DNA of 45,062 nt from Octopus bimaculoides (lineage: Eukaryota), in contig NC_068981.1 in NCBI RefSeq assembly GCF_001194135.2, positions 23,937,131 to 23,982,192 on the forward strand. Direction: 5' to 3'. Of this stretch, positions 2,993-43,293 are shown piece after piece. The position numbers were made by a program, and so were the translations under genes. The notes under the pieces were generated by a model. It was not told where the DNA came from. It made no database searches and worked only from the letters and a program-made list of their open reading frames with translations. Within the stretch, counting starts at the first letter, position 1, and the number at the start of each line of letters is the position of its first letter.

Positions 2993-3212
2993 GGAGGCCG
3001 TGAGCTGGCAGAAACGTTAGCACGCCGAGCGAAGTGATTAGCGGTATTTTGTCAGTCTTTACGTTCTGAGTTCAAATTCCGCCCAAGGCGACTTTGCCTT
3101 TTATCCTTTCGGGGTCGATAAATTAAGTACCAGTTGCGTACTGAGGTCGATCTAATCGACTGCCCCTCCCCTAAAATTTCGGGTCTTGTGCCTAGAGTAG
3201 AAAAGATTATTA
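2993..3212 (+). mobile_element. tRNA-derived SINE (ggggtcgataaattaagtaccagttg family)
   Basis: Head gagctggcagaaacgttagc, B-box gagttcaaattcc, central cctttcggggtcgataaattaagtaccagttg. Further copies at 8806-9335 and 16838-17115. Confidence 0.85.
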
Positions 3213-8805: not shown

Positions 8806-9227
8806 TGTGGTGAGCTAGTAGAAACTTTACTAAGCCTGACAAAATGCTTAGTGTTATTTTGACCACCTTTACGTTCTGAGTCCAAATTCTGCCAAGGTCA
8901 TCTTTGCTTTTTTTATTCTTTCGGGGTCGATAAAATAAGTACCAGTTGAACACTGGGGTCGATGTAATCGACTTAGCGCCTCCTGTGAAATTTCAGTCCT
9001 TGTGCCTATAGCAGAAAGGACTATTAAGGGCGGCGAGCTGGGAGAATCGTTAGCACACCGGGCAAAATGCTTAGCGGCATTTCATCTGTCTTCATGTTCT
9101 GAGTTCAAATTCCAGTTTTCATCTCTTTTGGTGTCGATAAAATAAGTATTAGTTGATGACTACTGGGGTCGATCTAATCGACGTACCCACTTGCCTGTTC
9201 ATTACTGGCCATATGCCAAAATTTGAA

Positions 9228-10320: not shown

Positions 10321-11256
10321 GACTGGGTGGACGAAAGAAAGAGTTTTTGATGATATTGTTCCAATGAATAATTACAACCTTTTTAAAGAAAGAACATTTA
10401 ACTTAAAAGTTAGTGTCTAGCAAATTCGACACTCAGTCAGTGAGTCAGCCAATCTCTCCTGTTCTGACATCCCTTTTAGCCACAATACAGTGGTGCATAG
10501 AAGTAAATTTCTGGTTAACTCATCTCTTCTTAGACACAGCATCGAAAATATTCTTCATTATGCCAAGTATTTACAGACCATTTTAAACCAACAAACAGTT
10601 GACATATTTGCATTGGTTCATATTTGTAGGAAGAGTAGCATGGAAAGCAGTTCAAGATTGTTGCAGAAAATATTGAAGCCGCATGGATTTAGGGTTACAT
10701 TTTTAGACTCACGATTGTTGCAAGGTTGTACTTTCGATTCCCAGACCGGATGACGTCTTGTTTTTTTCCTTTTTCTTTTTAATTTTCATCAAAATATTTC
10801 ATTTCCTGTTGTTCCATTTTGCTCAGCTGAAAATGAGTACACCCCCACCCCCACCCCGCCGCGATAGGTAAAAATCCTCGAAGTAGAAACAGTACTGCAC
10901 TGTATATATTTTTTTATTATGTGTATATATTTATTTTATTATAAATGCAAAACAACACCACAGAGGAATCGACGTAAGCATAAATAACACTGGTCAACAA
11001 AANNNNNNNNNNNNNNNNNNNNNNNNNNNNNNNNNNNNNNNNNNNNNNNNNNNNNNNNNNNNNNNNNNNNNNNNNNNNNNNNNNNNNNNNNNNNNNNNNN
11101 NNNNNNNNNNNNNNNNNNNNNNNNNNNNNNNNNNNNNNNNNNNNNNNNNNNNNNNNNNNNNNNNNNNNNNNNNNNNNNNNNNNNNNNNNNNNNNNNNNNN
11201 NNNNNNNNNNNNNNNNNNNNNNNNNNNNNNNNNNNNNNNNNNNNNNNNNNNNNNNN

Positions 11257-11793: not shown

Positions 11794-12100
11794 CAGTGTT
11801 TCTCAACCGGGGTCCACATGACTCCTGACGGTCCACATGACCCCATTTAGTATTTTGTGGGGTTCACACAAGCAAAATACTAAATTGGGGATCCACAGTA
11901 GTATATTAAGGGTCCATGAAGGAATTCCGCTTCAGATGTATTTATTGTAAGAAGCAGCTAGGTTTCTCTCTCTAATGTGTTACATAGTTCAACTTGCGCA
12001 AAGTAATGTGCTGAAAACAAAATAGGAATTTTAAAAGAAATATTTATAAAACTAGTTTTTAAAGATCAAATGGCTATGGGGGTCCAACAAACGGTTGAGT
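11794..12100. mobile_element. hAT/Charlie-type MITE; right end degraded or overlapped by a SINE
   Basis: Left TIR cagtgtttctcaaccgggg preceded by gtctaaag (Charlie-like NTCTARAN target). Right remnant gggtcc...ggttgag at ~12080-12100. Confidence 0.65.
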
Positions 12101-12281
12101 GACTGTGTAGTAAGAAGCTTGCTTCCCAACCACATGGTTCTAGTTTCAGTCCCACTGCGTGGCACCTTGAGCAAGTGTCTTCTACTATAGCACGGGCCTA
12201 CCAAAGCCGCGAGTGGATTTGGCAGACGCGAAACTGAAAGAAGCCTGCTATGTATGTATATATTTTTTTAAGTATATATTT

Positions 12282-12313
<32 letters not shown>

Positions 12314-12505
12314 TTGTACTCCCCTCCATCACTTGACAACCGATGTTAGTGTGTTTACGTCCCCGTAACTTAGCAAAAGAGACCGACAGGATAGGTACTA
12401 GGCATACAAAGAATAAGTCCCGTGGTCGATTTGTTCGATTAAAGGCGGTGCTCCAGCATGGCCGCACTCAAATGACTGAAACAAGTTATAGAATAAAAGA
12501 ATATA
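12097..12505 (+). mobile_element. Full SINE: tRNA head, CORE-like domain, internal microsatellite, LINE-like tail
   Basis: gtgtagtaagaagcttgcttcc head, ggcaccttgagcaagtgtctt CORE-like segment, (GT)n at ~12250-12312, tail ggtgctccagcatggcc...tgactgaaac. Confidence 0.85.
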
Positions 12506-15039
12506 ATAGAATCTGGGTAGCAGAAAGCTACATGTACGCTTGCCACAACGAGGGGTTTTCACGAGTAACATGTGATCCGCAAACATGTGATCCACTAACA
12601 TGTGATCCACAGTACATCACATCAAATGTAGCAGAATAGGAATGCTCAGAGATATAACTTCCAGGGCTAGGAACAAACTACTTACATCCCTGGCCATTAT
12701 GACATGTCATAGATGATTAAGTATAAGTAAATGTGTCAGATATTTAGTGAATGTATCTATTTATTAATGCGTCTGAGGAAAAACAGTGAACGGTAGAGCA
12801 TGAATAACATTGAGCGTTTTCGTGTATGTGATGTGTATGTGTAGACATTTGCATGTGACGTATGGGTGTACATATTCGTATTTGGGTGGGTACATGATAG
12901 CATGTATGCGTATATGTGTGTGAGCATGTGTGTAAGTGTCTGTGTGAGTGTATGTGTCTGATGAATGAGTTGTGTTTGTACTTTCTTGCTGCTATAAAGC
13001 GCTTAAAGAGCTTCATAGTTGAATGGAAACCTTTTGGCGTCAAATTGGCTTGTCAGTTTGACTTCTTGAATTGGTACACAAACATTCATATACTTAAAAG
13101 CTTGCACACACACACACACGCGCACACACACACACACACACACGCACACACACACTCACACCACACACTCATGTATTTATACACGTATATAAACATTATA
13201 TGTGTGTGTGTTTGTGCATATATATGTATATATATGAGTATATATATATATATATANNNNNNNNNNNNNNNNNNNNNNNNNNNNNNNNNNNNNNNNNNNN
13301 NNNNNNNNNNNNNNNNNNNNNNNNNNNNNNNNNNNNNNNNNNNNNNNNNNNNNNNNNNNNNNNNNNNNNNNNNNNNNNNNNNNNNNNNNNNNNNNNNNNN
13401 NNNNNNNNNNNNNNNNNNNNNNNNNNNNNNNNNNNNNNNNNNNNNNNNNNNNNNNNNNNNNNNNNNNNNNNNNNNNNNNNNNNNNNNNNNNNNNNNNNNN
13501 NNNNNNNNNNNNNNNNNNNNNNNNNNNNNNNNNNNNNNNNNNNNNNNNNNNNNNNNNNNNNNNNNNNNNNNNNNNNNNNNNNNNNNNNNNNNNNNNNNNN
13601 NNNNNNNNNNNNNNNNNNNNNNNNNNNNNNNNNNNNNNNNNNNNNNNNNNNNNNNNNNNNNNNNNNNNNNNNNNNNNNNNNNNNNNNNNNNNNNNNNNNN
13701 NNNNNNNNNNNNNNNNNNNNNNNNNNNNNNNNNNNNNNNNNNNNNNNNNNNNNNNNNNNNNNNNNNNNNNTATATATATATATATATATTTATATACATA
13801 TATATATATGCGCATATATACATACATATATAAACATAGAGGGAAAAGGAGAGAAAGAAAGTAAGAAAGGGGAGATATGAATATTTTGGAGAAAGGAAAG
13901 CAAGGAAAGGGTAAATAGAGTGACGACGAAGCAGAGGAAAAACGATACAATTTGAGAAATAAATTGAGCTAAGTTTGTAATTTGCTGGTAAATGCTACGA
14001 GGATTAATGAATAGTTATCTGAACTAAATCTGGATTTTTTGTTACTTGTTTCACTATCATATTCTATTATTCTGACATTTTTGTCTTCGTTCTTTATTTT
14101 TGTTATTCTTAGATTATTTATTTTGTCTTGTTCACTTTCTCTTTTCTCTTTGCTTTCTATTAATTATTACTGCAATTATTATTTTCATTATCTTTTTTTA
14201 CCTCCTTATTTAGTTATTTCTCTTTCTTTCTCCATCTTCTTTCTCATTTCGTTAATTTTGCTTTCTCTTCATTTTATTATTAGAGTTTCTTTTTTTGCTT
14301 CTTTCCTTTTAAACATTCTAGCATTCTCTATAACTCTAACCCTCTCTTTAACACTGACTCTCTCTCTCTCTCTCTCTCTCTTATTTTCTTTTTATTTCTC
14401 TCTCTCTCTCTTTCTCCGTCTCTCCAGCTCTCTTTCCACTCAATGCTGCCTTCAAAATGGCGATTGATTTCACACTAACTGCAAAACATTTTATATTATC
14501 AGTCTTCTTCGTGTTTTGATTAATTCTTGAATAGGCCGACTCACTAATGGAAATGAAAAATACAAAATTATGAAATCGATGTCAAAATAGCAAACATGTT
14601 GTCATATTGAGAACAAGATTTAAAAAATAAATAAGAAAGTAAGAAAAAGAAATAGAATTCCAATTATTTATAGATAATTAGAAATATGATTTCTTCTTTA
14701 AAGTTCTGCATTGATTTGTAATAAATCAGTTTTAACAAAATAAAAAAAAAATTGCTTAAAATAATACTGTAATTTTTAATGTCTTCGGGATATTTATTTC
14801 TATACTGTTATTTTTATTATCATTATCATCATCATTTTATCATCCTTCTCCTCCTCCTTATCATCATCTACACCAGCATTAATATCATCATCATCATCAT
14901 CATTACCGCCACCAACAGCAACTGCAGCTGCTCTAGTAGATGTTCCAAGCGGAGTTCTTCAAATTTTGGATAAATATTTTACTTTCAATTTCTAGGAACA
15001 TGAAAACAATCTCGGGTTTTGTTTTCTTTCTAAAGAACG

Positions 15040-15130: not shown

Positions 15131-15734
15131 TCCAAACACAACAGCGATTTCAAAAATAACAAGAAAAATAGCAAAAATAAAACTTCCAGTGATAACATAT
15201 AAACACAGAACAACTGGAATAGCAACATGTTGTCTAGTAGTGTTGCCTTTTAAAAACAACGGACTGTTGAGGCAGGAGAAATTATGAGTCTTTCCCCATC
15301 ATGAATTGGTGCACCCAAATATATACATATATATAAATATATATATATATATATAAATATNNNNNNNNNNNNNNNNNNNNNNNNNNNNNNNNNNNNNNNN
15401 NNNNNNNNNNNNNNNNNNNNNNNNNNNNNNNNNNNNNNNNNNNNNNNNNNNNNNNNNNNNNNNNNNNNNNNNNNNNNNNNNNNNNNNNNNNNNNNNNNNN
15501 NNNNNNNNNNNNNNNNNNNNNNNNNNNNNNNNNNNNNNNNNNNNNNNNNNNNNNNNNNNNNNNNNNNNNNNNNNNNNNNNNNNNNNNNNNNNNNNNNNNN
15601 NNNNNNNNNNNNNNNNNNNNNNNNNNNNNNNNNNNNNNNNNNNNNNNNNNNNNNNNNNNNNNNNNNNNNNNNNNNNNNNNNNNNNNNNNNNNNNNNNNNN
15701 NNNNNNNNNNNNNNNNNNNNNNNNNNNNNNNATA

Positions 15735-15778
<44 letters not shown>

Positions 15779-15789
15779 AACATATATAT

Positions 15790-15950
15790 ATATATATGAC
15801 GGGCGTCTTTCAGTTTCCATCTACCAAATCCACTCGCAAGGCTTTGATCGGCTCGAGGCTATAGTAAATGACAGTTGCCCAAGGTGCCCCGCAGTGGGAC
15901 TGAACTAGGGACCATGTGGTTGGGAAGCTTCTTACCACACAGCCATACCT
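15790..15950 (-). mobile_element. SINE 5' half (CORE-like family)
   Basis: Reverse complement matches 12100-12250 (ccttgggcaa, aaagccttgcgagtggatttggtagatggaaactgaaag). Confidence 0.85.
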
Positions 15951-16837: not shown

Positions 16838-17115
16838 GAGGAAAGTCGATTACATCGACCCCAGTGCGTGACTGGTACTTTATTTTTTGAACTAAGAATG
16901 CAAAGCCTTTAATGTTTATATATAATGATTTCAAATTTTGGCAGAAGGCCAGCAATTTCGACTTCAGTGCTTAACTGGTACTTATTTTATCAACCACGAA
17001 AGGATGAAAGACAATGTTGACCTCAGCGAAATTTGAACACCAGAACGTACAAACGGACGAAATGCCGCTAAGCATTTTGCCCCGCGTGGTAACGATTTTG
17101 CCAGCTCGCTACCTT
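16838..17115 (-). mobile_element. SINE plus a partial second copy (same family as 2993-3212)
   Basis: Reverse complement contains gagctggcaaaatcgttacc, gttcaaatttc, taagtaccagtt and ggggtcgatgtaatcgac. Confidence 0.8.
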
Positions 17116-18329
17116 AATGTTTATATATTTCCGATGAAAGAAAACCGTTGGAAAACAGTTTATAGCAGAGACTCCAGCTAAGAAGATCTGAAGAAGGAAT
17201 TGTAATTCCGAAATATCATCGGACTATAGATAACCAAATTACAACAGGTATATAGTCCATTTTTTGTTTTTTGTTTTATAGTGCATTGTTGTACCATTCT
17301 AAATTTTTATTTTTTATAATGGAAGCAGTTTTAGCAGCTAGCCACAAATCATTTTCATATACAACCAGAAACTACAAAAGAATACTTTACTGTTGAAATA
17401 AATGTTTCAATATTTATGCATTTTATCAGGTGTACAAAGTAAAGATAATTCAATTTATATAGGAAAGCCAAACTTTGGTGGGGAAAATCTCAGAAGAAAA
17501 ACAGCTTGAAAATAATTATAAATTTTAATTGAGATAATGGTCGCGACTATGTCTTTCTATTAAGGAAACAAAACTGCATGAAAAAAATAGAAAAATATTA
17601 AATTTTAAATGAGATAATGGCTCTTCCTTCGAAGCTACCTTAGTTTGTAGTAAAGAGTCAGCAAAATTTAAAATGGAGGTAACAAGAAAGAAATATCTGG
17701 GAGGGGACAGTTTTAGAAGTAGAAAATATACGCCTACCTAAATACAAATATATTCCAACATAAATATACATTTATGTGCAAATACATATGTTCATGTATT
17801 TTATATCATTCATCATACAGGTACCGTCATTATGTACAGGGGTCGGTTTGCTAATATTTTACAGTTTCCTCTTTGTTGTACTGCATGAATACAATGAGCC
17901 AGGCTCTTGTTTCTAGTCATTCTTTGATGTTGTCTACAAGTCTACAAGTATCTTTTAATGGCTTCTTGTTATTTGCCTCTCGACACTTCCTGTCAGTAAC
18001 TATTTTAAATGTATACATATAAATATGGAAAAAATCAAATAGGTACACACATAAATACTTACGTACATAGCTTTAATTACACGTACACATTGTGTGCGTG
18101 TTATATATACGCAAACATACATGTAAGTGGTAATATACAAACTGACACATCAATGGTTATATACACACATCCATATAAAAGGTAAAGTGAAGTTATAATC
18201 TAAAATTCGTTTAAAAGTAACAACGGAACATTTATGATGAGCGATTCAATACCGTGGGTAGAGCCTAGTTTATTGTAAAATTTGTGCTAACCGTGGCGCC
18301 AAGTTTTGCCAAATATATTATTCAAATGT

Positions 18330-18595
18330 GGCAGTATGGTTGCGAAGCTTGCTTATCAGCCACGTAATCTTCGGTTCAGTCCCATTGCGCAAGACCTTGG
18401 TCAGATGGCGTCTACAATAGTCCCAGGTTGATTAAAGCCTTGTGAGTGGACCTGATAGGCAGACACTAAAAGAAGACTGCTGTATGTTTGTATGTATGTA
18501 TGTATGTATGCATGCATGCGTGCAGATTTGTGTTTTGTTTTACGTATTTATTCTCATGCATGTAGTTGCATATCTAGACATGCATGTATGTATGT

Positions 18596-18785: not shown

Positions 18786-19089
18786 TTCGTGTATATGTAT
18801 ATATATGTATGTCTATGTATTTATATGTATTTATGCATGTATGCATATATGTGTATATATATGGATCTCTATACGCAGATCAATGTGTCTATATATGGTT
18901 GTATACTCCTATATATTTGTTTTTTATGTATCTATCTTTGTGTATCGATGTATATATAAAAAATAATTGTGTATATGTATATGTAACTTTGATAACTTTG
19001 ATAGATTTCGGCCAATATAGGCCCAGGCCATGTATAACTCAATAGCATTACCTGGTGAAGCTTTTTAGCCTTATATGGGGCACCATAGC

Positions 19090-21275
19090 CCACTCTAGCA
19101 AAGAATTATTATTGTTGGAGACACATCCGGGTGTAGGAAGTTGATCCGGGATCTTTTGAAGAAATTTGTTCAGTGAACATCTGAATTTTATGGGATCCGT
19201 TCCCGTTTTGACGTATTTTGGTATGGTATTAAAGAGAGCTGGACCGGTTGAGGTAAATTAATTGCGACGTAATGTAATGAGTTCGAGTTTTGTAGTGGTC
19301 GGATAGCATGGGGGCCAAATCTCAGATGGATTTTAAAATTGATGCCAACATCATTTGTGCGCTATTGATGGAATATTTTCCACATAACAAATGATATAGC
19401 GCTCCCGGCGGCATTGGAGAGAGTAGAGATTGAGATTTTGAGTGGACCCCAATAATCAATGCCTCTCATGCCGTTTATCTTTCTTGTCATTGACCTCTGG
19501 AGTGCTTCTACTTTCATAATGCGTTGCTTCGTATGGGGGAACCACAGTGGGCAACAGTACTCAAGGGAGAGTCGGACAAAAGTAAAGCAGAGAAGGATGA
19601 TGGTGTAGGCATCTCTAGACCGGAAAGGTCTCAGCTTCCAGGAGCACATTTTGCGGGCCAAGTAAACCTTGCTGTTTATGTGGGAACTCCAGCTTAGATT
19701 GTTATCAACAATTACTCAAAGAGCTCTGGTGTTGTTGGATGACACTAGGGAGTCGCCCGAGGGAAGAGCATATGGTAATTTCAGAGTATCCTCTTTCTCA
19801 AAGTGGATCAAATAAAACTTACCTTCATTTAAAAGCATATTGATTTTTTCCGCCCGTTGGACAATAGAAAACAGATCTGACTGAAGGTATTTTCGGTCTC
19901 TCATGCCGTTTATGGCTTTCTGAAGTTTGGAATCATCTGCAAAGATTTTCAATGTAGAATGTTTGATGACATCTACTATGTCATTGATGTAAATAATGAA
20001 ACGGAGTGGGCCCAACACAGTACCTTGTAGGACACTACTACTGACTTTGGCTGAGCTGGATCGTATTTCCTCAAATACAACAGGTTGGGTTCTGTTCGTC
20101 AAGAAACACTTTATCCACTGCAGCAGCTTTTTACGGATTCAAATGTTGGATACTTTCTTCAGCAGGATTTTGTGGTCCACTCAATCAAATGCCAGGCTGA
20201 AATCAAGGTATATGACATCAGTGTTGGAGCCCTCTCCCAACGCTTTTAAGATGTCAATAAAATGGTGCAGAAGCTGCGACAGGCAGTTCCTGCCATCACG
20301 GAAACTATGCTGGTTGGGGTTCAGTAGATTGTTGCCTTCGAGGAAGTGAGTTATTCGCGGTCTCACCACCATCTCAAATACGTTAATGATATGAAAAGTG
20401 AGTGAGATCGGACAGTAATTCCCTGCAAGAGATTTGTTACCCTTTTTGATGACTGGAACGACAGACTGGGTAAGAAAATGACCAGGAATGCAGCCTGCAT
20501 GAAGTGAGTCTCTCCAGAGATCAACTTGAGGGGGTGCAATTATTTGATGTCGACACATCTTCAGGACAGTGGTAGGGAACTTATCGGGACCTAGTGCCGA
20601 GTTGTGCTTGATCTTATCTATTTCTGTTAGGATATCAGGAGCACTAAAGTTATGTCAGATATAGTTAGTTGAGGGTTTATATCACTGATACTAGCCAGAT
20701 CAACTGCATTAGGGTTACTGAAGACAGAGCAGTATTGTCTCAGCAGTATCTCGCACATGGATTTATGTTGTTGTTGTTTTTTTCAAACGAAAACAATATT
20801 TTGGGATTGAGTTTTATTTTCTCCATGGCCCAACTCTCTTCAGCTGCTGCTCTTTGACTGTTAATGATGATCATCATGCTTTTTTGGAGATCGTGTTTTT
20901 TGATTCGAGTGAAGAAATGGCAGCCGAATGAGTGCGTTGCTGCTGACAGTATTTAAATTGGTTGATTTTTCTTGTTATTTCTTTTTATTTTTCTGATATT
21001 TACTCTGCTATTTCTTGAGATTATGCACTTAGATTTGTATACTGATCTTAATAGAGTATGTTTTGCGCATATATTTCTCACAATATCTACAAATGTCTGC
21101 CATGATCAGTTAATGTTGAAGAGGGTGTGTGCATGCATGAAGGCCCAATCAACTTGTGAAAGATCATGATTGATCGCATCCCAGTCTGCGTTATGAACAT
21201 CCATAGTTTCAAATGGATAGACTGGAGAGATATCACTGGATTTGATCTTTGGGTGGTAGAATCTCAGGTCGCAGA
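19090..21275 (-). mobile_element. 5'-truncated, disabled CR1-clade LINE (RT and C-terminal region)
   Basis: ORF pieces YCPISLT..NQHSFR..DVIYLDFSLAFD, QGTVLGPL.FIIYIND..FADDSKL, VRLSLEYCCPLW.P, GPQLFNTIP..IPDQ. Confidence 0.92.
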
Positions 21276-21278
21276 GAA

Positions 21279-21547
21279 CTAACAAAATTAGATTGTTGCA
21301 ATAAGAATACAAGCTATAAACAATACAATACTATAAGAATTATTATTGTGAATATTAAGTTTAGTTAGATATCATTCTTATTTTTATTATTATCAATTAA
21401 TTAATAAATTAAATGAATGTATTTCTAAATATAATTATTTAGTATAATGAAGATATCTTATTTGTGATTTGTAATTAATATTAAATTACTAATATAATGA
21501 TGTATTTTATAGTAAATACAAGTATTTACACTAGAAAGATTCAAAAT
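21279..21547 (+). repeat. Left arm of ~270-bp AT-rich inverted repeat
   Basis: ctaacaaaattagattgttgcaataag...ctagaaagattcaaaat is the reverse complement of 22310-22584; about 90% identical by eye, with one divergent 16-19 nt patch. Confidence 0.95.
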
Positions 21548-21977
21548 TTTTTCTTTAGATAGGACTTCCGGATAATACCTTCCTTACTAACTACTGTTCT
21601 GTCTGGTGTGGTCTTTGACTTCCTGTTCCAGGCATGGCAGTTACATAAGTAATCATCCTTGCCAAAATATGCCTCCACCTCCTCACGGGTCACTTCAATA
21701 CTGGTGATTAAGTACTTGCCACCGCTTTTCGGGTCCGTCACCTACACTTTGGACATGCTGCATAAAGGCAGCACCTGTCCACTACACTTGAATTGTACGT
21801 CAGTGGCACCCTTCACGTGTCAGCTAACCAGCGCCGGCTTGTGCCTCAGCCCATAGACAGGCCTTTTGATAAAGACAGGCACTGGCTGTGCTGATTCTAG
21901 CTCCTGTGTTGCTCCAGCTCCTGTGTTGCTGCCCCTATCTCCGCCATTGGAATGAAAACACATGAGAAGGTGGCCGC
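21541..21977 (-). pseudogene. unc-5: Disabled fragment of netrin receptor UNC-5 (N-terminus, Ig1, start of Ig2)
   Basis: Reads PVPVFIKRPVYGLRHKPALVS*HVKGATDVQFKCSGQVLP...KV*VTDPKSGGKYLITSIEVTREEVEAYFGKDDYLCNCHAWN...IRKSYLKKKF. Compare vertebrate UNC5 from memory: P.FL.EP.DAYIVKNKPV.L.C.A.PATQIYFKCNGE...IEVSRQQVEELFG.EDYWCQCVAW...RIAYLRKNF. Stops at 21820-21822 (in place of a Cys) and 21742-21744; a 17-bp tandem duplication at 21897-21930 shifts the frame. Confidence 0.85.
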
Positions 21978-22309
21978 ATGTACGTGTGTATATGTATTTG
22001 TGTATATATATATGAATATGTGAATATATGTCTATGTATATATCTATATATGTGTATGGATGATTTTTACGAGTATGAGAGTATATATTTGTATGTATAT
22101 ATATGTGTGTGTATGTATGTGTATATGTATGTAAATGCGTATATATATATATGTGTGTCTGTTTGTGTGTGTTTGTGCTTATGTGTGTTTGTGTTTGTGT
22201 TTGTGTGTATGCTTGTGTATATGTATGTATATCTTTAAGGTTTGTTATCTTAATCTATATAATAATCTAGAATTTGGAAAATTTATTTTTTAGTGGATTA
22301 ATTCAGAAT

Positions 22310-22584
22310 ATTTTGAATCTTTCTAATGCAAATACTTGTATTTACTGTAAAATACATCATTATATTAGTAATTTAATATTAACTACAAATCACAAATAAG
22401 ATATCTCCATTATACTAAATAATTATATTTAGAAAGACATCCATTTAATTTATTAATTAATAGATGATAATAATAAATGGTTTTATTTGACTTACTAACT
22501 AAACTTAATAACCACAATAATAATTCTTATAGTATTGTACAGTTTGTAGCTTGTATTCTTATTGCAACAATCTAATTTTGTTAG
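22310..22584 (-). repeat. Right arm of ~270-bp inverted repeat
   Basis: Reverse complement of 21279-21547. Confidence 0.95.
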
Positions 22585-23389
22585 GTCTGAAAGAATTAAT
22601 AAAATTTGGATATATAATATTTATAGTCCTTTATCTAAAAAACAATATTGAAAATATTTATCGCGGATCGGTTCTCAATACTTATGCTTTTGTTTATCTT
22701 ACTTTATTTTATTTACTGAGTTCTCTCTTCCATAATATACGTAAATAAGGACATTTACTTGTTAGTTACTGTGAATAACCCTTATTTAAGTAACTTCAAA
22801 TTTGGTTACTTCTGAAAAGCTCCGTAATATTTTGATATCCATTATTATAGCTTAGCTTTATATCTATGGGGTAACATAGGCTGTAATTATCGTAGCTCTA
22901 AGTTTCTCTTCCTGTTTTTACAGAATTCTCCCTCCGATACACTACGTAAATAAAGAACATTTTTGTTTTTTTGTTAGTTACTCTAAACAATCTTTATAAT
23001 ATGGAAAGATGCGAGCAAGAGAAATAATATTGTTAAGATTAAAAATCTGGAAAATTACAGGACAAGTTATTACACTTGGAAAAGTTCAGGACAACTTGTT
23101 GCATCTGGTAAAGGACAGAACAAGAAAATGTTTACTTAGAAAATTGCAGCTAAGGATAAAATTTCAAATAAAATATTCAGATTTAGAAAATATTAGCCTT
23201 TATTAAAACTAAAAGTTTTAACAAAAGTTATTACTCCTATTTGTTATTACATGTTACTTGTATTAAAAATTTAAAATAGATAGATATACATACATACATA
23301 CAACATACATACAACATACAAAATAGATAGATATACATACATACATACAACATACATACATGCATACATACATGCATACATACATATAA

Positions 23390-25978: not shown

Positions 25979-26272
25979 NNNNNNNNNNNNNNNNNNNNNN
26001 NNNNNNNNNNNNNNNNNNNNNNNNNNNNNNNNNNNNNNNNNNNNNNNNNNNNNNNNNNNNNNNNNNNNNNNNNNNNNNNNNNNNNNNNNNNNNNNNNNNN
26101 NNNNNNNNNNNNNNNNNNNNNNNNNNNNNNNNNNNNNNNNNNNNNNNNNNNNNNNNNNNNNNNNNNNNNNNNNNNNNNNNNNNNNNNNNNNNNNNNNNNN
26201 NNNNNNNNNNNNNNNNNNNNNNNNNNNNNNNNNNNNNNNNNNNNNNNNNNNNNNNNNNNNNNNNNNNNNNNN

Positions 26273-26304
<32 letters not shown>

Positions 26305-26369
26305 TAGCCTTTTTAGGTGTTTCAATCATTAGACAGTGGCCATGCTGGGGCACAGCCTCGAAGGGGTTT

Positions 26370-27378
26370 AATCGAATGAATCTATTACACCTCTGATGAT
26401 TCGCAGAAATGAAATTAGTTGAGCTTTGCTGCTGATGTCTGTACTTCCATCGATTTGTAAGGACCTCAAGTTTTCAAGTTCATCTTTTGCTTCAGTGAAA
26501 TGTTTGCGGAGCAGATCATCAATGTCTCGCGAAATGTCTTGAATTTTACGAAAGATCGTGTGGGCAGACAAAGGAGTGGTCTTAATTTGTTTGACGGCTT
26601 CATCACTAATCATTGTGCCAACGGCGATCTCCAAGGCTAATAATGTTTTCGGCATCAGAATGTAGTCTTTTTCTTCTTTACCAAAAAGCTGGCAAACTTG
26701 TAACTAGCGATTTGAGCTTTCTCGGGAATAGAGTAAAATTTCTTCAACCTTTTTCATTGAATTTTAAAATTATTTTTACCATTTCAAAGTATTCTTTTAT
26801 CTTGTGCTTATGTTGCGGATGATTTGTTATCAAATGACGTTGAAGTTTCCTGGAAACCATCGCTTCATTTGAGAGTGTTGTTAAATAAACCATACAAAAA
26901 AGAACCGAGTTGTCTTTTTCCGATAATATAAAACCATATTGGATGCAATTTTCATTATATTTTTGTTTTGTTGAGGTGGACTTTTTGTTCTGGTGTTCGT
27001 CTTGTTTGCTATGAGTCTCTTTCTCATTTTTCTGAGGTCTCAATAAATATTTGTCCTAGTTTAAATCTAAAACTAAAAATCGATTAAAATTAACATAAAA
27101 TAATTTATGTAAATTATAAATATATCAAAAATTAAAAACTATTAGGTCTACTAAACAGACAATCCCGGTTTAAATGCAAAACTGCTGTTCGTCGTGTAAT
27201 GTAATTAATTTGTATTTACCGTATTTTACGATTTATATAATTAATTTATATTTACGCTTGAACTTTGCGAATGTTCTTCGATCGTTGTTTCCCGAAGATC
27301 CCGAAAATAATTTTCGCGACACTCCAGGAATCTATCACGGCACACCTTTGTTCGCAGCACACTGTTTCACAGACACTG
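26370..27378 (-). mobile_element. hAT (Charlie/Buster, ZBED5/SCAND3/FAM200-like) transposon, 5' half
   Basis: Left TIR cagtgtctgtgaaacagtgtgctgcg at 27378. BED-finger remnant QYGF..FCMVY.TLSNEAMV.RKLQRHL, and SLQIDGSTDISSKAQL. Homologous to 34166-35100. Confidence 0.88.
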
Positions 27379-27604
27379 CTATAGATAGACATACAGACAG
27401 ATAAATGCACACACATATACACACTCACGCACAGAGAAAGAGAGAAAGAGAGAGGGGGAGGCATTTATGCGGATAAACAACTTAGATGTATGAAATATAA
27501 CAGTTTGGGTATGAAATACAAGATAAGTATATATGTAATCATGCAAAATGAGAGAAAGTGATAAATATTTAAGTATCAATATATAGATGCTTATATCGAT
27601 CGAT

Positions 27605-28160
27605 TTAGCTCACACAGAGTTCAAAGAAAATTAAACGGAAGAAAGGTGTTATAAATCCAACAGCTGTTTCTAGGTGCTCGAAAATCCATCGTATTGTTGG
27701 TATATGTAGTTCATCACAATATTGGGCCGTAATTGAAGGGATCAACATTGGATGAATCGAACCTCTGTCACTTCTCTGCATTGTGATCTGAAATGTAAGA
27801 TCTTCTCTACCCTGATGACGATTGCTCGATTTGTCCACTGGTGATTTCTACCATTAAGGCCGATTATTTGATGAACTACATCTGCCAATATTACGATGGC
27901 TCTCCGAACCCCTAGAAACAGCTGTTTGACTGATAACACCTTTCTTTTTTCTTTCTCTTTAATTTTCTCTGTCGTTTGTGCTCTGAGTAAGTTGGGTCTA
28001 TTAATATAAATATTTACATATTTATACTAAAATATTCATCGTCTGAAAGGCTCCACGTTTTGCATTCTACCGTTTTGCATGTATCCGTATATACATATCT
28101 TTTATTTCATACCCAAACTGATATATTTAATATATCTTATTTGTTTATGCGCATAATTGA
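27605..28160 (+). mobile_element. Second copy of the pLTR-like repeat, with an inverted partial duplication
   Basis: 27760-28160 matches 196-578. The reverse complement of 27605-27728 matches 27858-27990 (tgatgaactaca...cctagaaacagctgtt...ataacacctttctt). Confidence 0.65.
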
Positions 28161-28979
28161 CCTCATATCTGCTCAAATTGATCCCTCTTCTAGCCACTCT
28201 ACTCCGTGGAAATGATTCCCTCAAAAGTAATCGGATTCTAAGTGTCAATTATTTGAGCACAACTGTCTTTTATACTTCGAATCTCTCGACCTCATCTATT
28301 GAATATATATGTATACGTAAATGTCGAACGATGAAAATAAGTGCCCAACACCACACTGGTGGAAATAATATTTTTATTTGTAAATTAAGGCTGCCCTTGC
28401 TTTCATGTTAAGAAAAGTTGTGAAATATCCTAGCGCCTTAGCAATTTTTCAAGCCGATTTGATGCAGAAAAGCTTTCACCTCCATGTTGGGAAACAGTCT
28501 CGTTTAGTTCGCGGGGATTTAACTGAATTTATACGACTAAAACAATGAATCAATGAATCAAAGGAAGCTACTCCTGGGTGGCATCATTTGAATGTTAGAT
28601 TCTCTTGTATTTACCTTTTGGCAAATTGTTGTGTGGTCACTTTGTTTGCATTATTTTGTTTTTGTTCTGTGCATGATGTTCTTGTACTTGTGTGCTGAAG
28701 AAGTTCGTCATTGGGGCACATTTCTTCTGTATGTGGAGTTTGTGTGCTGTGTTCAGATTTCCCGATTAGGAAAGGGGGCTATGTTGATGGGATTACCGTC
28801 GCAGATAGAGGGTCTTCTTTGAAATATTTGAGTGTATAATATTGCATGTGTACGCAGAGAGAAGAATGTTTCATACCTAATGTTTCAGATATCTGTTGAT
28901 TGTATAATGTTTAATTCTTCAGTAATAGAGAGTTCACATTTGGTACCCCATCCCCCGTATTTTAGTGTTTAGCAATAAT

Positions 28980-30109: not shown

Positions 30110-30258
30110 AATGAAATAAAGTAGCTTGCTTACCAACCGCATGATTCCGGGTTCAGTCCCACTGCATGACACCTTGGGCAAGTGTTTTCTGCTGTAACTT
30201 CGAACCGACCAAAGCCTTGTAAGTGGATTTGGTAGACGGAAACTGAAAGAAATCTGTC

Positions 30259-30289
<31 letters not shown>

Positions 30290-30745
30290 TCCCCCAACAT
30301 CGCNNNNNNNNNNNNNNNNNNNNNNNNNNNNNNNNNNNNNNNNNNNNNNNNNNNNNNNNNNNNNNNNNNNNNNNNNNNNNNNNNNNNNNNNNNNNNNNNN
30401 NNNNNNNNNNNNNNNNNNNNNNNNNNNNNNNNNNNNNNNNNNNNNNNNNNNNNNNNNNNNNNNNNNNNNNNNNNNNNNNNNNNNNNNNNNNNNNNNNNNN
30501 NNNNNNNNNNNNNNNNNNNNNNNNNTGTGTGTGTGTGTGTGTGTGTGTGTGTGTCTCGTCAACATCACTTGCCAACCGTTGCTGGTGTGTTTACGTTCCC
30601 GTGACTTAGCGGTTCGGCAAAAGAGACCGATAGAATAAGTACTAGGCTTACAAAGAATAAGTCCTGGGGTCGATTTGCTCGACTAAAGGCGGTGCCCCAG
30701 CATAGCCGCAGTCAAATGACTGAAATAAGCAAAAGAATGAAAGAA
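30110..30745 (+). mobile_element. SINE (CORE-like family) spanning an N gap at its internal microsatellite
   Basis: ggttcagtccc B-box, caccttgggcaagtgtttt, aaagccttgtaagtggatttggtagacggaaactgaaag; tail ggtgccccagcatagcc..tgactgaaa. Confidence 0.88.
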
Positions 30746-31211
30746 TATAAGATTATATATATATATGAGTGTGTGTGTGTATGTGTGTGTGTGTGTATTA
30801 TTACAAATAGATATATATATATGTATACATGTATGTATGCATGTATGTATGTACGTATGTATGAATGCTAGTAGGTAGATAGGTAGGTAGGTAGGTCGGT
30901 CGGTCGGTCGGTATGTAAGTGGGTTTCTGCAATATGACTGAATGAAATTACTTTACGAGAGTATGTACTCTGAATATGATAAAATCTCGTAAATGTAACG
31001 TGATGCGTTGAAAGCATCAATCAACTGAGATTAAGCAATTGATAAACAGAAAGTCTCTTTAAGTAGGGTTAGAACATACGAACTGCACGCAAAGCTGGAA
31101 CTATTCTTTGAAACGGATGAAACACGATGCCACCGTATGCCCGCAGTTGCAGAACTGAAACAAATAAAAGATACACGCGCGCACACACACACTCACTCAC
31201 ACATGTATACG

Positions 31212-31949: not shown

Positions 31950-33830
31950 TTATGAATTATAGATAAGCAACGTTATTTTTTGTCTCTTTAAGCCGAGCGT
32001 GTATTTTTTAAGAGAAAATTTATAAATAATGTGTTGCTTACATTTTTTGTAATATTGTGTATCTTTCCTTGAATTTTAATTGAAATGAAAATATTCTCAA
32101 TGTTCTGTGCTCATACATTTCTATATGTTCAACCAGTAGAATTTTCTTTGTCTTCTGGCTCGTTCATAGAAATTTCTGGTCAGACCAATGTAACTTTCTT
32201 TACAATTGGGACATTTTATGTTGAGTATTAAATCCTTTGTCTTGCGCGGTTATTTTGAAAGAATTTTGTCGCTGAACTAGCTTCAAAATATGTGGAGTTT
32301 ATAGTGCATGGCTCACGCTTGCTAGCTTTTCACGTTTCAATGGAGATTTTGGAATTATTGGCTAATGTGAATTTTATCCATTTCTTTAGTTGACTCGTAA
32401 GATGTCCATTTTCTTTTTTGCTTTTCTATTAATTCTAGGAATGTTTTGTAGTTTTAGAAAACCATTCAGTTCATTCAATCGAATTTGCCACAGTTGTAGA
32501 GCATTCACTATCACATATATTGGCTTTGTCACGCAGTAGAGAATGTTTTACATATTGTGCGATGAATAACATTTTGGAGGATATCTAAAAGCGCAACGTT
32601 TTTATGATTGGCTTCTGTAGTGAATCTAATGGACGGATGAAGGGCATTTAGGAGATTATGAAGTATTTATATTTCACCTTATATATANNNNNNNNNNNNN
32701 NNNNNNNNNNNNNNNNNNNNNNNNNNNNNNNNNNNNNNNNNNNNNNNNNNNCATATATAAAGCAATGCTCGACAGGATGTATCTTCTTTTGTTAAGTTTA
32801 TTTTATACTTCAAGAACTTTTTACTTTTCCCCAGACATCCACTCTCATGGCTAACAAACAAAGGAACATATTTTGTGCCAATGGTTGTCTCGTTTATCCA
32901 TAAATTGAACTGATGTTTTACATCAGTCAAAGCTGTTTTCTTTCAATATAAAACGTAACACTTTGATGAACAGATCTGTTCTGAAACGTTCATAAACTAT
33001 GTCTCAATGTTTTCTACCTAGTATGCCTTCTGCTCCAGTTCATTAATGTGACACACGGACTAGACACATCAAATCATGTTAAAATGCTACCCTCAGCAAT
33101 AATTGATGGAATACATTTAAGGAATCTATTACATTATGTGCGTAACTCGAAATTTTTATCATAGAGGTCTAAGGAGCGTATCTATAAAGTGACTCAGACT
33201 GTGTTTGTTAGATTGTAGTTCAGTAAGTATTGGTCTGTGTTTGAGATCAGCTGGTCTTGATATAATTATTTATTTGTAATTTTGTTCATTGGCAGCTTTT
33301 TGAATAACCGAGTTTTTTATGAACCTTCAGTGAGCCACACAAATTACTTCCCCTGTCTTTGAGCTTGTATATGTAATCAATTTCTTTATCAGTAAAAGTC
33401 AGAATATTAGTTCATTGATGATTCGATTTTGTTTATAATTACTTTATCTAGAGTTTTTACATATATCTTCCCTGTAGTAATTTTCATCCCTTAAATTTTT
33501 CGATGCTTTATCTTCGTAAACATTTTATCTTCAGTAATTATAATAATGCTACCACCTTTGTCAGCTTTCTTAAAATAATTGACTTATCATTTTCAATGTT
33601 TTCAGAGCTTCTTAACTTTTTACGGAAGTTTCGTTTGCATTTATAAATATCACTGTGGAATATCACTGACGTATCGATATTAGTATCCATATGTTCAGCT
33701 CTTCCTCTATACGGAGTAAAACCTGAGGCGTCGATTAAAGTGGCATATGTCCATTTTGAATTCGGTCATATTTGATACTGATGTAAGAGGACATTTGAAT
33801 TCCTTTATTAATAATGAAATCTAATATTTA
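31950..33830 (-). mobile_element. Decayed Penelope-like retroelement (RT + GIY-YIG endonuclease)
   Basis: Minus-strand motifs in order: DICHFNRRLR, KKADKGGSII, LCGSLKVHK, LKHRPIL..LSHFIDTLLRPL, TTIGTKYVPLF, LNALHPSIRFTTE..ALLDI, KTKDLILNIKCPNCKESYIGLTRNFYER. Many stops; (TA)n and an N gap interrupt the RT near the catalytic region. Confidence 0.88.
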
Positions 33831-34165
33831 CTTCATTTTTACCCGATGAATTTCTAATTTTCGCGGGGTCAGCATTTTTTGTGGATTTGTTTTATTCCTT
33901 GTTCCATCAGATCGTCTATCAAATGGAAGTATGTTCCCCACCAAAGAATTTGGATGAGTTTTAGTAAAGCGGTGTGATATTACATTAAAGAGACAAGTTG
34001 GATAAGGACAAGTTGGATAACGCACATTACAAGAAAGAAATCAAGAACAAAACAAAACTGCAGTTTTACCATATATATATATATTTCGAGGCTGTGACTC
34101 CTTCTTCGGAACATGTGGAAAAGAGAGGAGTGGACCAGTGTGCACCACCAGTATGTTATACCTGT

Positions 34166-36260
34166 GCCTGCCAAATGTGTGCTGCAGCACAGCGGTGTGC
34201 TGTGATAGATTTCTGGACTCCCATGAAAAATATTTTCGAGTTTTTCGGGAAAAAACAATCCAAGAACATTCGCAAAGTTCGAGCGAAAATATAAATTAAT
34301 TATATAATTCTTAAAATACGGTAAATATAAATTAATTACATTACACGACGAACAGCAGTTTTGCATTTAAACCGGGATTGTCTGTAAGTAAATCGTTTAG
34401 TAGTCCTAGTAGTTTTAATTTTTGATTTATTTATAATTTACATACATTATTTTATGTTGATTTTAATCGAATTTTAGTTGGACAAATTTTTATTGAGAAC
34501 TCATCAAAACGAAAATATAGTGAAAATTACATCCAATATGGTTTTATATTATCAGAAAAAGACAACTCGGTTCCTTTTTGTATGATTTGTTAAACAACAC
34601 TCTCAAATGAAGCGATGGTTCCCAGAAAACTACAGCAGCATTTAATAACAAATCCTCTGCAACATAAGGACAAGATAAAAGAACACTTTTGAGATGCTAA
34701 AAAATAATTTTAAGATTCAATGAAAAAGGCTGAAGAAATTTCACTCAATTCTCGAGAAAGCTCAAATCGCTAGTTATAAGATTGCCCAGTTTTGGGCAAA
34801 GAAGAAAAAAAGCACTTTCTGATACCGAAAACATTATTTTACCAGCCTTGGAGATCATCGTTGGTATAATGATTAGTGACGAAGCCGTCAAACAAATTAA
34901 AGCCATGCCTTTGTCTGCCCACACGATCTTTCGTAAAATTCAAGACATTGCGTGAGACATTGGTAATCAGCTCCGCAAACATTTCACTTTAGCAAAACAT
35001 GAACTTGAAAATTTGTGGTGCTTACAAATCGATGAAAGTACAGACATTTGCAAGAAAACTCAACTAATTTCATTTCTCCGAATAGTCAGTGGTGGTAAAA
35101 TCATAAGTCAGTTTTTCTTTTGTTGTGATTTGAAGGAAAGAACGACAAGAGAAGATGTGTTTAACCTGGTAAATCAAATTGTCGTATTGAGAGGGATGCA
35201 GTGGCAAACTTGTATTAGCGTTTGCATTGATGGCGCTCCACCCATGCAGGGTCGAAAACAGGGCTTCGTGGTTAATGTATTACAAACAAAAAAAATAGTT
35301 AAAACTGTACATCGCATGATTCACCACGAAGTTTTGGTGTCAAAATCTCTAGCTGATGATCTCCTGAAGACGATGGACAACGTTGTTAAAATGGTGAATT
35401 ACATAAAATCGTATTCCCTACGGTGCAGACTTTTTGCATCCTTATAAATTCTGATTTTAAGTGTTTACTGCTTCATACAGAAGTGCGATGGCTTTCTAAA
35501 GGAAAAGTGCTCTCTGGATTTATCTCTTTGCGAACTGAAATAATAGGTTTCATCGATGCAGAAAATTCAGGATTTGAATTTCTTAACGATGATAATTGGT
35601 GTTTGGAAGTAGCATTTCTCAACGATCTGTTTATGAAGTTGAAAGTTTTAAATTTGAATCTGCAAGAAAATATTACAATTCCAGAAAAAAAATTAATGTC
35701 TTTCGCCGACAAGTTAAAACTGAGGATAAGGAAAGTTAAAAACTCGCAATTTGATTGCTTACCAGTCGTAGAAGCTTTTCCAAACAAATTTAAAATTTTG
35801 TCAGAAGTGCAGAAGACAGTAGAAAACCTCTCTGTATCATTTTCTAAGTATTTTCCATCACTTGATTATCAAATGTACGAGTGGGTCATCAATCCTGTTC
35901 GCAAGATACGACAGTACACACCTGCCATTAACATTAACAGAAGAAAAATTTAAGAGACTTGAAAAACGATCCTGAGCACAAAGCCTTATTTTCTGTTCTA
36001 GAATTGTCAGAACTTTGGATTTCGTTTTTGAACTAATATCCTCGATTAGCTACTACAAACGTTAAAACTCTGTTGGCCTTTGGATCATCGTATCTTTGCA
36101 AAGTAGGCAGCTCTGTGCTTATGAAAGTAAAATAAATAAAAGGGAACGATTACAGATGGTAGACGAGGAGCTACGTATTTGTTTATCTAATTTCGAGCCA
36201 CGCTTTCACAAAATTCTTTCTCAAAATCGATTGCATCCTTTTTACTAAAAACATTATTAT
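34166..36260 (+). mobile_element. hAT (Charlie/Buster-like) transposon with disabled transposase; right TIR not found
   Basis: LQIDESTD, CIDGAPPMQG, HRMIHHEVL and LLHTEVRWLSKG motifs; degenerate left TIR at ~34166; stops and frameshifts. Confidence 0.93.
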
Positions 36261-36278
36261 TGTATTAAATTACCTATA

Positions 36279-36790
36279 TATCTTTTATCTTTTACCGGTT
36301 TCAGCCTCAGGCTAAAGTCATGCTGGTGCATCACCTGTAGTTACTCGGTGTTGTTTCCGGGATTGTTTTTGGTGAAGCAGCGGAGCTGCTCTTCTTTGCA
36401 TTTCCTGCCGCGACATGGATTCATCTGGTATTTCAGATAGAAACCTGTCCAGACGTTCCTTGAGAACTTCCACATCAACACCATGCAGATCTCTAAAGTA
36501 ACCAGGCAGGATGTTGAACAATTGCTGGCTCTTGGAACCCAGACTATTGCAGTACTGTGTCTCTATTTTAGATGATGAAGACGGGATCTTTGGTATGATG
36601 CAGTGCCATCCAGTTCGAGGATTGGTATAACTGTCAATTCCAAAATTGGGCGCTAAGCCCTCCAAGATTATCCAAATATATAGCACCTCATATATCTCGT
36701 CTTCTCTCCAGGGAATATAGACTCTGCGCCTTTAGCCTCTCCCAGTAGCCCATCTTTTGCATCGAGTCAGTCTTCTTTTGCCTGTTGGTG
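36279..36790 (-). mobile_element. 3' end of a CR1-clade LINE, including tail
   Basis: RLKAQSLYSLERRR, IWIILEGLAPN, QQLFNILP..RLDRFLSEIPDE; tail gatgcaccagcatg...ctgaaaccgg(taaaaga)2. Confidence 0.88.
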
Positions 36791-36858
36791 CTGGACTGCT
36801 TCCAGTCCCACATTTTGTGGTGAGGGTCTATCAGAATAAAATAGTAATCAAAGAGGTC

Positions 36859-37702: not shown

Positions 37703-39334
37703 ATCATCATCACCACCACTACTTCATTTGAAATATTCTTCCAATTATTTATCAATCAAAAAAATACCTGTCCAATAAAATTTTTATCCCTTCTTCCATT
37801 ACATACATGTATGTGAATACATACACACACACACACACACACATACACACAAACACACACACACACACATGTATACACATATATATATACATATATATTA
37901 TATAGATACACACACATGTAAATGTAAACACGCACAAACACATATATATACAAAGCATATACATTCACAGACACACGCTATGTACATATATATGTGTGTA
38001 TATANNNNNNNNNNNNNNNNNNNNNNNNNNNNNNNNNNNNNNNNNNNNNNNNNNNNNNNNNNNNNNNNNNNNNNNNNNNNNNNNNNNNNNNNNNNNNNNN
38101 NNNNNNNNNNNNNNNNNNNNNNNNNNNNNNNNNNNNNNNNNNNNNNNNNNNNNNNTGTGTGTGCGTGTGTGTGTATGCATGTTTATCTATATATCTATAT
38201 ATGTACAACTATATATATATATCATATATATACATATATATGTGTGTGTATATGCATATAAATGCACACACACACATACAATATTGTATTTCGTCTCTTT
38301 TCATGAGTTCAATGCTTTACAGTTTATTCCCAATTTTCAATATATTTCCAATATATCAATTTCTCAGAGATTTCCAATGATATTAAATTTGCAAAGTTTT
38401 ATTACTTAATCCATTTGGTTTCAGAAAGTTGCGATTGAAATACACACAAACGCACACACACACACACATACACACACACACATGCACATATTTTGCATAT
38501 ATACACAAATCGTCATAGAAAATTACAACATATATTCAGACAGACTTGCGTACATACCTACCCACATACATACAGACACACACACGCATACACTCATATA
38601 TATATATATATACATAATATATATACATACTTATACTCCCCCACAAACACATATATATTGGCATGTAGGTAGCTACATATGTGTGAGAGTAGGCATGGGT
38701 CTGTATCATATATGCTTTCATATCTGCATTTGTATGTATGCATGCGTATATATGTGTCGGGACGTGGGCGTGGGGTGAATAAAGGTAGAATTTCAAAGAA
38801 GATCATATGTCCAATTGGCCAGGTAGTACTACGCTTTTCTAAACCTTTTATGAATTTTTAATAACAGAAAGTAGATTAAAACAGTTGGAAGCATGGCTAC
38901 GTGGTTAAAACGTTAGGTTCTAATCGCTCGGTTCGAGTTTATGTGATATTGCACTGTACTTTGGGGTATTTGTCTTCCTTGCCTTCTGTTGACCAATGAA
39001 TGCTATGTCAATGTAATTTGAAAGGCGGACAGACGGTGGCTATATGGAAGAATGGTATAACCTGACGCATGGTCGGACCGTCAGCGGTCTGACCAATGTT
39101 TTCGTTGCGGCTTATTTTAATACAATGTTTATGTGTACATTTTCATAAATGCTTGTCTGAGCACAATTCAATGCAAGCATGAAACATCTGACGAAAGTGA
39201 AATATTAGAAGCAAATCGAAATATTGCCCAATATTGACCTCAAAACTGTGCGACCCGATCTCATTTCCGAGGTTATTTTAGTGGTAAAAAAGAGTTGTTA
39301 TGCCAAAAACAAAGTTTATTTGGTAGCCTTTATA

Positions 39335-43290: not shown

Positions 43291-43293
<3 letters not shown>

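Follow-up and report, generated by a model that had tools for sequence, protein, structure and literature searches.

How did a fragment of a gene for a netrin receptor come to lie between two long inverted repeats in the genome of Octopus bimaculoides? The locus is part of a stretch of 45,062 nucleotides (contig NC_068981.1 of assembly GCF_001194135.2, positions 23,937,131–23,982,192), called the window below. It consists of two inverted-repeat arms, a partial copy of an UNC5 gene and a microsatellite between them, and a long interspersed nuclear element (LINE) that abuts the left arm. The original prediction, made from the bare letters, saw in it either a Pack-type element with terminal inverted repeats (TIRs) or a one-off inverted duplication that arose in the course of repair or retro-insertion. 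The assignment to UNC5 and the Pack-like architecture were borne out, but the hallmarks of mobility were not: no target-site duplication (TSD) at the arm ends, no third arm copy within the 45 kb and no recognizable feature of a transposable element in the arms were found. The evidence, namely a spliced-looking cargo, an abutting LINE and a candidate TSD around a larger unit, leans towards the one-off event. The inverted-repeat unit probably does not form an element by itself; tentatively, it may well be the debris of one LINE insertion that proceeded by template switching and also copied nearby sequence in inverted orientation.

Parts of the locus and their junctions

Read on the minus strand, the UNC5 piece in sense orientation, the left arm and the LINE in sense orientation are directly seen to abut one another in this order. 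The left arm is joined on both sides (21275–21282 and 21544–21550) through short overlaps, with no filler. At its outer end, the last recognizable LINE codons (LVLCDL, aligned to IVVCTL of relatives) overlap the outermost 5–8 nt of the arm; within this overlap with the second open reading frame (ORF2) of the LINE, 4 of 5 positions are still identical between the two arms, and the overlap looks like a microhomology junction. At the inner end, arm and UNC5 copy share about 7 nt (AAAAT.TT). The fragment had been predicted to stop at YLKKKF, overlapping the inner end of the left arm, and it does so: the arm homology takes in the TGA and the F codon and reaches into the last K codon (21541 to about 21550).

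The LINE was recognized by matches to the RVT_1 domain; tblastn with ORF2 proteins of Argonauta and of other LINEs covered 21282–19087. Its best match in the protein index, which holds no octopus LINE proteins, came from Argonauta (39%). About 5–9 stops and at least 2 frameshifts interrupt the coding sequence, which starts directly after the endonuclease domain. The N-terminal stretch of the LINE combined with the arm-encoded residues gave no Pfam match to an endonuclease, and no endonuclease remnant was found beyond the right arm; therefore, the element is 5'-truncated and not split. The absence of such a remnant also led us to reject an insertion of the inverted-repeat unit into the LINE.

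The long inverted repeats, estimated by eye in the original prediction as about 90% identical, are real. Aligned over their full length, the arms have 255 matches, 18 mismatches and 12 gap columns, which corresponds to 93% identity over aligned bases and 89% with gaps counted (Jukes–Cantor (JC) distance 0.069; BLAST E 2e-106). Two gapless blocks, 21381–21550/22307–22476 (170 nt) and 21275–21368/22495–22588 (94 nt), are each 94% complementary. As single-stranded DNA, the arms would pair into one long stem. The interval between them is 756 bp; the predicted enclosed segment was thus present, with its length of 762 bp slightly overstated. The predicted microsatellite within this interval was also found (TG/TA tract, 21985–22240).

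The terminal 21-mer of the arms occurs only twice in the window, once in each arm (shuffled sequences are expected to give 0), and no third arm copy was present within these 45 kb. The arms resembled none of the other repeats of the window, and their k-mers gave 0 matches in JGI metagenomes. Open frames longer than 38 codons were absent from the arms, as were tRNA genes (0 by ARAGORN). Rfam returned nothing at gathering thresholds and, at E<=1, only sub-threshold microsatellite look-alikes (mir-297/466). No recognizable transposable-element feature was found in either arm, and their interpretation as tRNA-derived short interspersed nuclear elements (SINEs) was rejected, since they have no tRNA-like or other Pol III head.

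Identity and lesions of the UNC5 copy

The proposal of a disabled fragment from the N-terminus and first immunoglobulin domain (Ig1) of UNC5 was confirmed. The minus-strand translation of 21544–21942 matched the Pfam family Unc5_NetrinR_N (PF25609, E 3e-19), and UNC5B, UNC5A and UNC5D were matched in the PDB (E 4e-11 to 1e-9). The copy contains about 15–22 nt of the 3' end of intron 1 and exon 2 (encoding the end of the signal peptide, a Gly-rich linker and Ig1), and it extends 17 nt into exon 3 (..SY|LKKKF). Two in-frame stops were found: a TGA at 21820–21822, in place of a conserved Ig cysteine, and a TAG at 21742–21744. There are at least 3 frame-shifting lesions, among them a 17-nt tandem duplication and a deletion in the Gly-rich linker; further deletions amount to 5 nt and 9 nt. 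Of a functional UNC5 gene (Ig1, Ig2, TSP1 and the ZU5, UPA and death domain exons), only Ig1 is represented, and tblastn found this one piece and no other UNC5 exon in the window.

A word-index protein search with the fragment gave no match. An exhaustive HMMER search yielded one close relative (86% identity over 66 residues), whose 90% cluster comprises the O. bimaculoides 'netrin receptor UNC5B' XP_052833804.1 and the older model A0A0L8HQ03. XP_052833804.1 represents the parent type of the copy. In the Ig1 part, 89 of 102 codons encode the same residue as this protein (87% amino acid identity); for each of the 13 differing residues of this clean block, a single nucleotide change suffices.

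The model XP_052833804.1 (GCA_001194135.2) has a length of 384 amino acids, and its gene spans 434 kb. It encodes Ig1, Ig2 and two TSP1 domains and has no transmembrane segment, ZU5 or death domain; the model may be incomplete, or it may represent a truncated paralogue of the secreted type. The three models of the parental UNC5B gene differ at the 5' end and at 'ALCP|'.

No function is expected for the locus, because the cargo has no open frame, acceptor or donor; it is best regarded as a non-functional curiosity without intact reading frame or splice sites. The suggestion that transcription could make it a hairpin or small interfering RNA source against unc-5 is not borne out by the geometry: in the hairpin, the UNC5 sequence occupies the loop and not the stem, so small RNAs derived from it would target the arms and not unc-5, and the copy has no working splice sites.

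Probable template of the copy

Both ends of exon 2 are informative about the template. At its 5' border, the cargo reads HAATFS|CVFIPMA, compared with ..IYAATFS|GVFIPMA in the older octopus model, while the newer model has a different exon 1 (..IFIHS|GVFIPMA) spliced onto the same point. The two models diverge upstream of |GVFIPMA; therefore, 'AATFS' represents the polypyrimidine/AG end of intron 1, read through in the older model. The acceptor AG of the cargo is mutated to AT at 21962. Homology to the parental intron upstream of 'AATFS' was untraceable, as both sequences turn to microsatellite there.

At the 3' border, the cargo is continuous through ..KSY LKKKF (..KSY LKKRF in the parent). 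At this point, the bivalve Tegillarca, the gastropod Plakobranchus and the nematode Auanema share a phase-1 exon 2/3 intron, located inside the aromatic or Gly codon that precedes L/M-K/R-K/R-x-F; in Tegillarca, the junction reads GCC T|gtaagt..tttag|AT TTG AGA. A fish UNC5D locus was uninformative on this intron, being without the Ig1 exon. Two exon borders of the octopus gene, one after the signal peptide and one at 'ALCP|V.G.W', coincide with those of Tegillarca, as judged from the three gene models. By this comparison, the octopus UNC5B parent very probably has the exon 2/3 intron as well. If so, the cargo lacks this intron but retains the acceptor region of intron 1, and therefore a partly spliced RNA is its likely template: a partly processed transcript, spliced at exon 2/3 and unspliced at exon 1/2.

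Flanking duplications and age of the parts

No direct repeat in register with the arm ends was found (at least 4 perfect positions, or at least 6 with one mismatch); only 'TA', which is uninformative, is possible as a TSD there. The similarity of 8/11 between 21268–21278 and 22585–22595, put forward as a possible old TSD, is present in the sequence, but it is no better than chance: among random position pairs of equal spacing, 14% reach or exceed it within ±6 nt, and the two strings themselves overlap the arms. Beyond the 3' end of the LINE, no TSD for the right flank was found; the only 9/10 match lies inside the LINE ORF and is within background.

A direct repeat was instead found around the larger unit formed by the LINE, the left arm and the UNC5 piece (18983–21984): 18968–18982 and 21985–21999 agree at 14 of 15 positions. 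Each copy is part of a TG/TA tract, and the two tracts have the same polarity. When 15-mers were drawn at random from such tracts, 0.5% of the pairs reached 14/15, and positions matching equally well numbered 4 of 246 in the right tract and 1 of 528 in the left one. The repeat is suggestive of a TSD around this unit, although it is not conclusive. The sub-threshold Rfam matches at 21974–22160 (mir-297, mir-466 and mir-1277, at most 39 bits compared with gathering scores of 81–90) are look-alikes of the TG/TA microsatellite and not miRNA genes.

Table 1. Features of the locus and assembly gaps of the window (positions are those of the window)
Feature	Positions	Strand	Remarks
Candidate 15-bp TSD, left copy	18968–18982	plus	TGTGTATATGTATAT; directly beside the 3' end of the LINE
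5'-truncated non-LTR (LINE) retrotransposon	18983–21282	minus	RVT_1; ends in a tandem 9-mer, (ATCAAAGTT)x2
Left arm	21275–21550	none	276 nt, 16% GC
Dead partial UNC5B-like copy	21544–21984	minus	Pfam, PDB, HMMER, tblastn, codon analysis
Y codon and LKKKF	21544–21561	minus	conserved phase-1 intron position between 21561 and 21560
17-nt tandem duplication	21897–21930	minus	AGCAACACAGGAGCT..; inside the Gly/Ser-rich linker
Intron-1 acceptor remnant	21962–21984	minus	..gcggccaccttctcaT|gt; corresponds to the 'AATFS' read-through of A0A0L8HQ03
TG/TA microsatellite	21985–22240	plus	begins with the right copy of the candidate TSD (15 nt, 21985–21999)
AT-rich spacer, unique	22241–22306	none	from microsatellite to right arm
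Right arm	22307–22588	none	282 nt, 20% GC
Assembly gaps	11003–11256, 13257–13770, 15361–15731, 25979–26272, 30304–30525, 32688–32751, 38005–38155		

Decay has reached about the same level in the arms, the cargo and the LINE. Divergence from a common ancestor is about 0.035 per arm; the implied neutral distance of the UNC5 Ig1 block is about 0.054 ± 0.015 (102 codons); the number of stops in the LINE (about 5–9 per 730 codons) implies a p of about 0.05–0.07; and the candidate TSD has 1 mismatch in 15 positions. An estimate that made the cargo three times older than the arms was dropped once the clean 102-codon block was used. In a study of octopus repeats, a JC distance of 0.09 was equated with about 25 My (PMC13282606); on this scale, and with comparable decay of all parts, they are compatible with one event about 10–15 My ago.

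Origin of the structure

We tentatively favor one complex insertion of about 3.0 kb (18983–21984, minus strand) into a TG/TA microsatellite. Target-primed reverse transcription would have started at the 3' end of the LINE RNA (18983) and aborted just past the endonuclease domain (about 21282). A first template switch, through a microhomology of 5–8 nt (AGAAC[TAA] vs AGACC[TAA]), would have led to a stretch about 0.3 kb from the insertion site, where 276–282 nt of the present right arm, the original local template, would have been copied in inverted orientation to give the left arm. A second switch, through about 7 nt (AAAAT.TT), may then have moved synthesis to a UNC5B-like transcript that was partly processed, at a point 17 nt into exon 3; from there, exon 2 and some 20 nt of intron 1 would have been copied. 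The end would have been joined to the target, leaving a 15-bp duplication, with 21985–22240 as the right half of the target microsatellite, and all parts would have decayed neutrally by about 4–7% since then. We infer an RNA origin of the cargo, the direction of copying between the arms and a single event from the order and strands of the parts, the truncation of the LINE, the junctions, the spliced-looking cargo, the candidate TSD and the similar decay, as well as from the lack of a TSD at the arm ends; for these reasons, one LINE insertion is favored. Double template jumps of LINE reverse transcriptase and jumps onto genomic DNA are documented (PMC2104539), as are L1-mediated inverted duplications in tumours (PMC7058536).

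Several points weigh against this scenario. The UNC5 part is an internal fragment, whereas chimeric retrogenes typically contain a full-length RNA copy; inverted copying of nearby sequence as a middle part is unusual, and three template switches are needed. The exon 2/3 intron of the octopus parent is deduced from other animals and not seen in the gene itself. The candidate TSD is located in a microsatellite, where its per-position chance is 0.5–1.6%, rising to about 5–15% when the freedom of junction placement is considered, and the tract beside the LINE could be the LINE's own tail. The copy number of the arms is that of the 45-kb window, and this window is rich in long repeats of inverted or foldback-like structure, which raises the prior for arms that are transposon ends.

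The main rival, which we consider unlikely, is a single-copy Pack-TIR that did not transpose: the arms would be the TIRs of an older DNA transposon of the non-autonomous type; when this broke internally, gap filling or template switching would have copied in UNC5B-derived sequence, and the LINE would have landed independently. The architecture resembles that of animal Pack-TIRs, which are mostly single-copy with breakpoint microhomology (PMC8277862), and the overlap of about 7 nt at the junction of arm and cargo fits such a repair. 'TA' flanks, as for Tc1/mariner, result if the element is taken as 21281–22582; many octopus TIR families expanded at a JC distance of about 0.09 (PMC13282606); and the window contains other long inverted repeats. 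However, the arms must then be a transposon, although no third copy is present in 45 kb and no TSD of 8–11 bp was found. The cargo is apparently intronless at exon 2/3, and retro-duplicates of this kind are excluded by the Pack-TIR definition. Two coincidences would also be required: a LINE on the same strand whose 5' end falls exactly at the outer end of the arm, and a 14/15 repeat around LINE, arm and cargo. Still less probable is an active version of this origin, a mobile Pack-type family with long TIRs whose 1.3-kb unit transposes as a whole and leaves copies with the same or a different cargo elsewhere. A gene fragment does lie between arms of about 276 bp, an arrangement shared with Pack-MULEs and Drosophila Ssk-FB4, but neither a TSD at the arm ends nor another copy in the window was found, the cargo is probably RNA-derived, and multicopy Pack-TIRs are rare in animals. 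Moreover, the protein index contains no protein 52–99% identical to the parent, and therefore no annotated sister copies of the exon; such a family is unsupported. By the same measure, it is very improbable that octopus has a mobile long-TIR Pack family (foldback or Mutator-like) which transduplicates pieces of neuronal genes such as UNC5 and whose transcription could modulate the parent.

The arms might alternatively be two independent copies of a dispersed repeat of about 280 bp that face each other by chance; in one version, the left one would have been reverse-transcribed as the middle part of a chimera, and the right one would be an unrelated neighboring insertion. We regard this as doubtful. 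The arms are collinear from end to end, as expected of complete members of a family, tripartite chimeras whose middle part is a SINE have been described, and the window has another inverted pair of one family (26388–27383/34157–35094). Yet the arms have no tRNA-like or other known RNA head, and they have no further copy in 45 kb, whereas the SINE-like families of the window occur 3–4 times; with so few copies, two of them are unlikely to fall within 0.8 kb of each other, and the arms end at the junctions with the LINE and the cargo. The cargo could also be an exon in situ, belonging to a decayed UNC5 paralogue or segmental duplicate with intronic inverted repeats on both sides, which in the past could have promoted circularisation of the exon. 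The retained acceptor region of intron 1 agrees with this, and octopus introns are huge, so that other exons could lie outside the window. The copy has no donor site, however, and runs past the conserved end of exon 2 into LKKKF before it stops, with no YREPIST.. anywhere in the window; lacking a donor and with its exon truncated, this origin is largely refuted and highly improbable. Least credible of all is an assembly artefact, that is, a false inversion or duplication. The assembly is a gapped draft with a short-read style scaffold and 7 N gaps in the window, but none of these is less than 3 kb from the structure, and the arms differ at 18 positions and in an indel patch, whereas an artefactual duplicate would be near-identical. 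A single LINE insertion with template switching thus stays our preferred, if tentative, account.

Other repeats of the window

The window is AT-rich animal DNA (28–41% GC) with many TG/TA microsatellites. Most of its 7 assembly gaps have TA/TG or CA microsatellites at their borders, which places the breaks of the assembly at simple repeats. Immediately to the right of the right arm, at 22712–22997, blocks of about 40 and about 32 nt recur with a spacing of about 205–212 bp and 78% identity; this looks like an old local tandem duplication. A second LINE C-terminal fragment, unrelated to the first, is located at 36318–36855 on the minus strand (tblastn to ORF2 proteins, 36694–36855; ORF, 36318–36686).

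Long inverted structures seem to be common in this genome. A coding-like repeat forms a second inverted pair at 26388–27383 (minus) and 34157–35094 (plus), its members 82–87% identical and separated by about 6.8 kb. The ORFs of this pair (26368–27043 and 35013–35953) look transposase-derived, but Pfam and PDB confirmed no family. The labels 'hAT-like' and 'mariner-like', considered for other ORFs of the window, likewise found no confirmation in Pfam or PDB. A foldback-like self-complementary repeat of about 700 bp (27458–28164) has halves that are 69% complementary, each of which matches a unit of about 400 bp at 200–606 (70–75%). A self-inverted stretch of 354 bp (43291–43644, 74%) lies beside (TG)n/(CA)n tracts and may be partly low-complexity.

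Among dispersed families, a SINE-sized one (about 170–215 bp) is represented by 3–4 copies in both orientations (2986–3212, 8809–9185 and 16933–17118; 70–82% identity), in which ARAGORN found no tRNA-like head. Another family is found at 12100–12506, 15768–15945, 18344–18522 and 30119–30750 (69–84% identity), and several of its copies adjoin N gaps or microsatellites.

Significance and comparison with known systems

The locus has no bearing on netrin signalling, because the copy is dead and without splice sites and its UNC5 sequence lies in the loop. If the template-switch origin is true, it would be a clean cephalopod case in which the reverse transcriptase of a LINE joined the RNA of the element itself, neighboring sequence and a partly spliced host pre-mRNA into one insertion. 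It would help to explain how LINEs reshape the repeat-rich octopus genome, and it would mean that a Pack-like arrangement, a gene fragment between inverted repeats, can form without a DNA transposon. If the arms prove to be a TIR family, animal Pack-TIRs would be extended to molluscs.

In either case, the locus is of a known kind, a chimeric retro-insertion or a Pack-like pseudogene fragment. Among the systems compared, LINE-mediated chimeric retrocopies (Buzdin/Gogvadze; PMC2104539) share with it a 5'-truncated LINE as the 3' part, direct joining of the parts in the same transcriptional orientation with short overlaps, a cargo without an intron that relatives have and, as a mere candidate set in a microsatellite here, a short direct repeat (10–20 bp) around the whole. 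Unlike in those retrocopies, which contain a full-length 5' part, the 5' part here is an internal fragment of a partly spliced pre-mRNA, and the middle part is an inverted copy of a sequence 0.3 kb away, which produces the inverted repeat.

Tan et al. (2021) described 370 Pack-TIRs in 100 animal genomes, with no molluscs among them, mostly single-copy and with microhomology (PMC8277862). As in these elements, which include single-copy gap-filling cases and Drosophila Ssk-FB4, inverted arms enclose a host-gene piece of 100–5000 bp whose parent is elsewhere; the apparently single copy and the breakpoint microhomology are shared as well. In contrast to them, the arms here are assigned to no TIR transposon and have no TSD, and the cargo looks retro-derived, which the authors' definition excludes. 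Plant Pack-MULEs and transduplication, including Turmoil-1 of C. elegans (PMC2572040), likewise combine inverted termini of more than 200 bp with captured coding sequence; however, they have TSDs of 9–11 bp, belong to recognizable Mutator families and are often multicopy, none of which is shown here, and they capture genomic DNA with introns, which is not shown here either. The L1 fold-back inversions and duplications of human tumours (PMC7058536) are similar in that LINE integration inverts and duplicates nearby host DNA. Those events are somatic, megabase-scale and accompanied by sister-chromatid bridging, whereas the octopus locus is a germline-fixed local copy of 0.28 kb.

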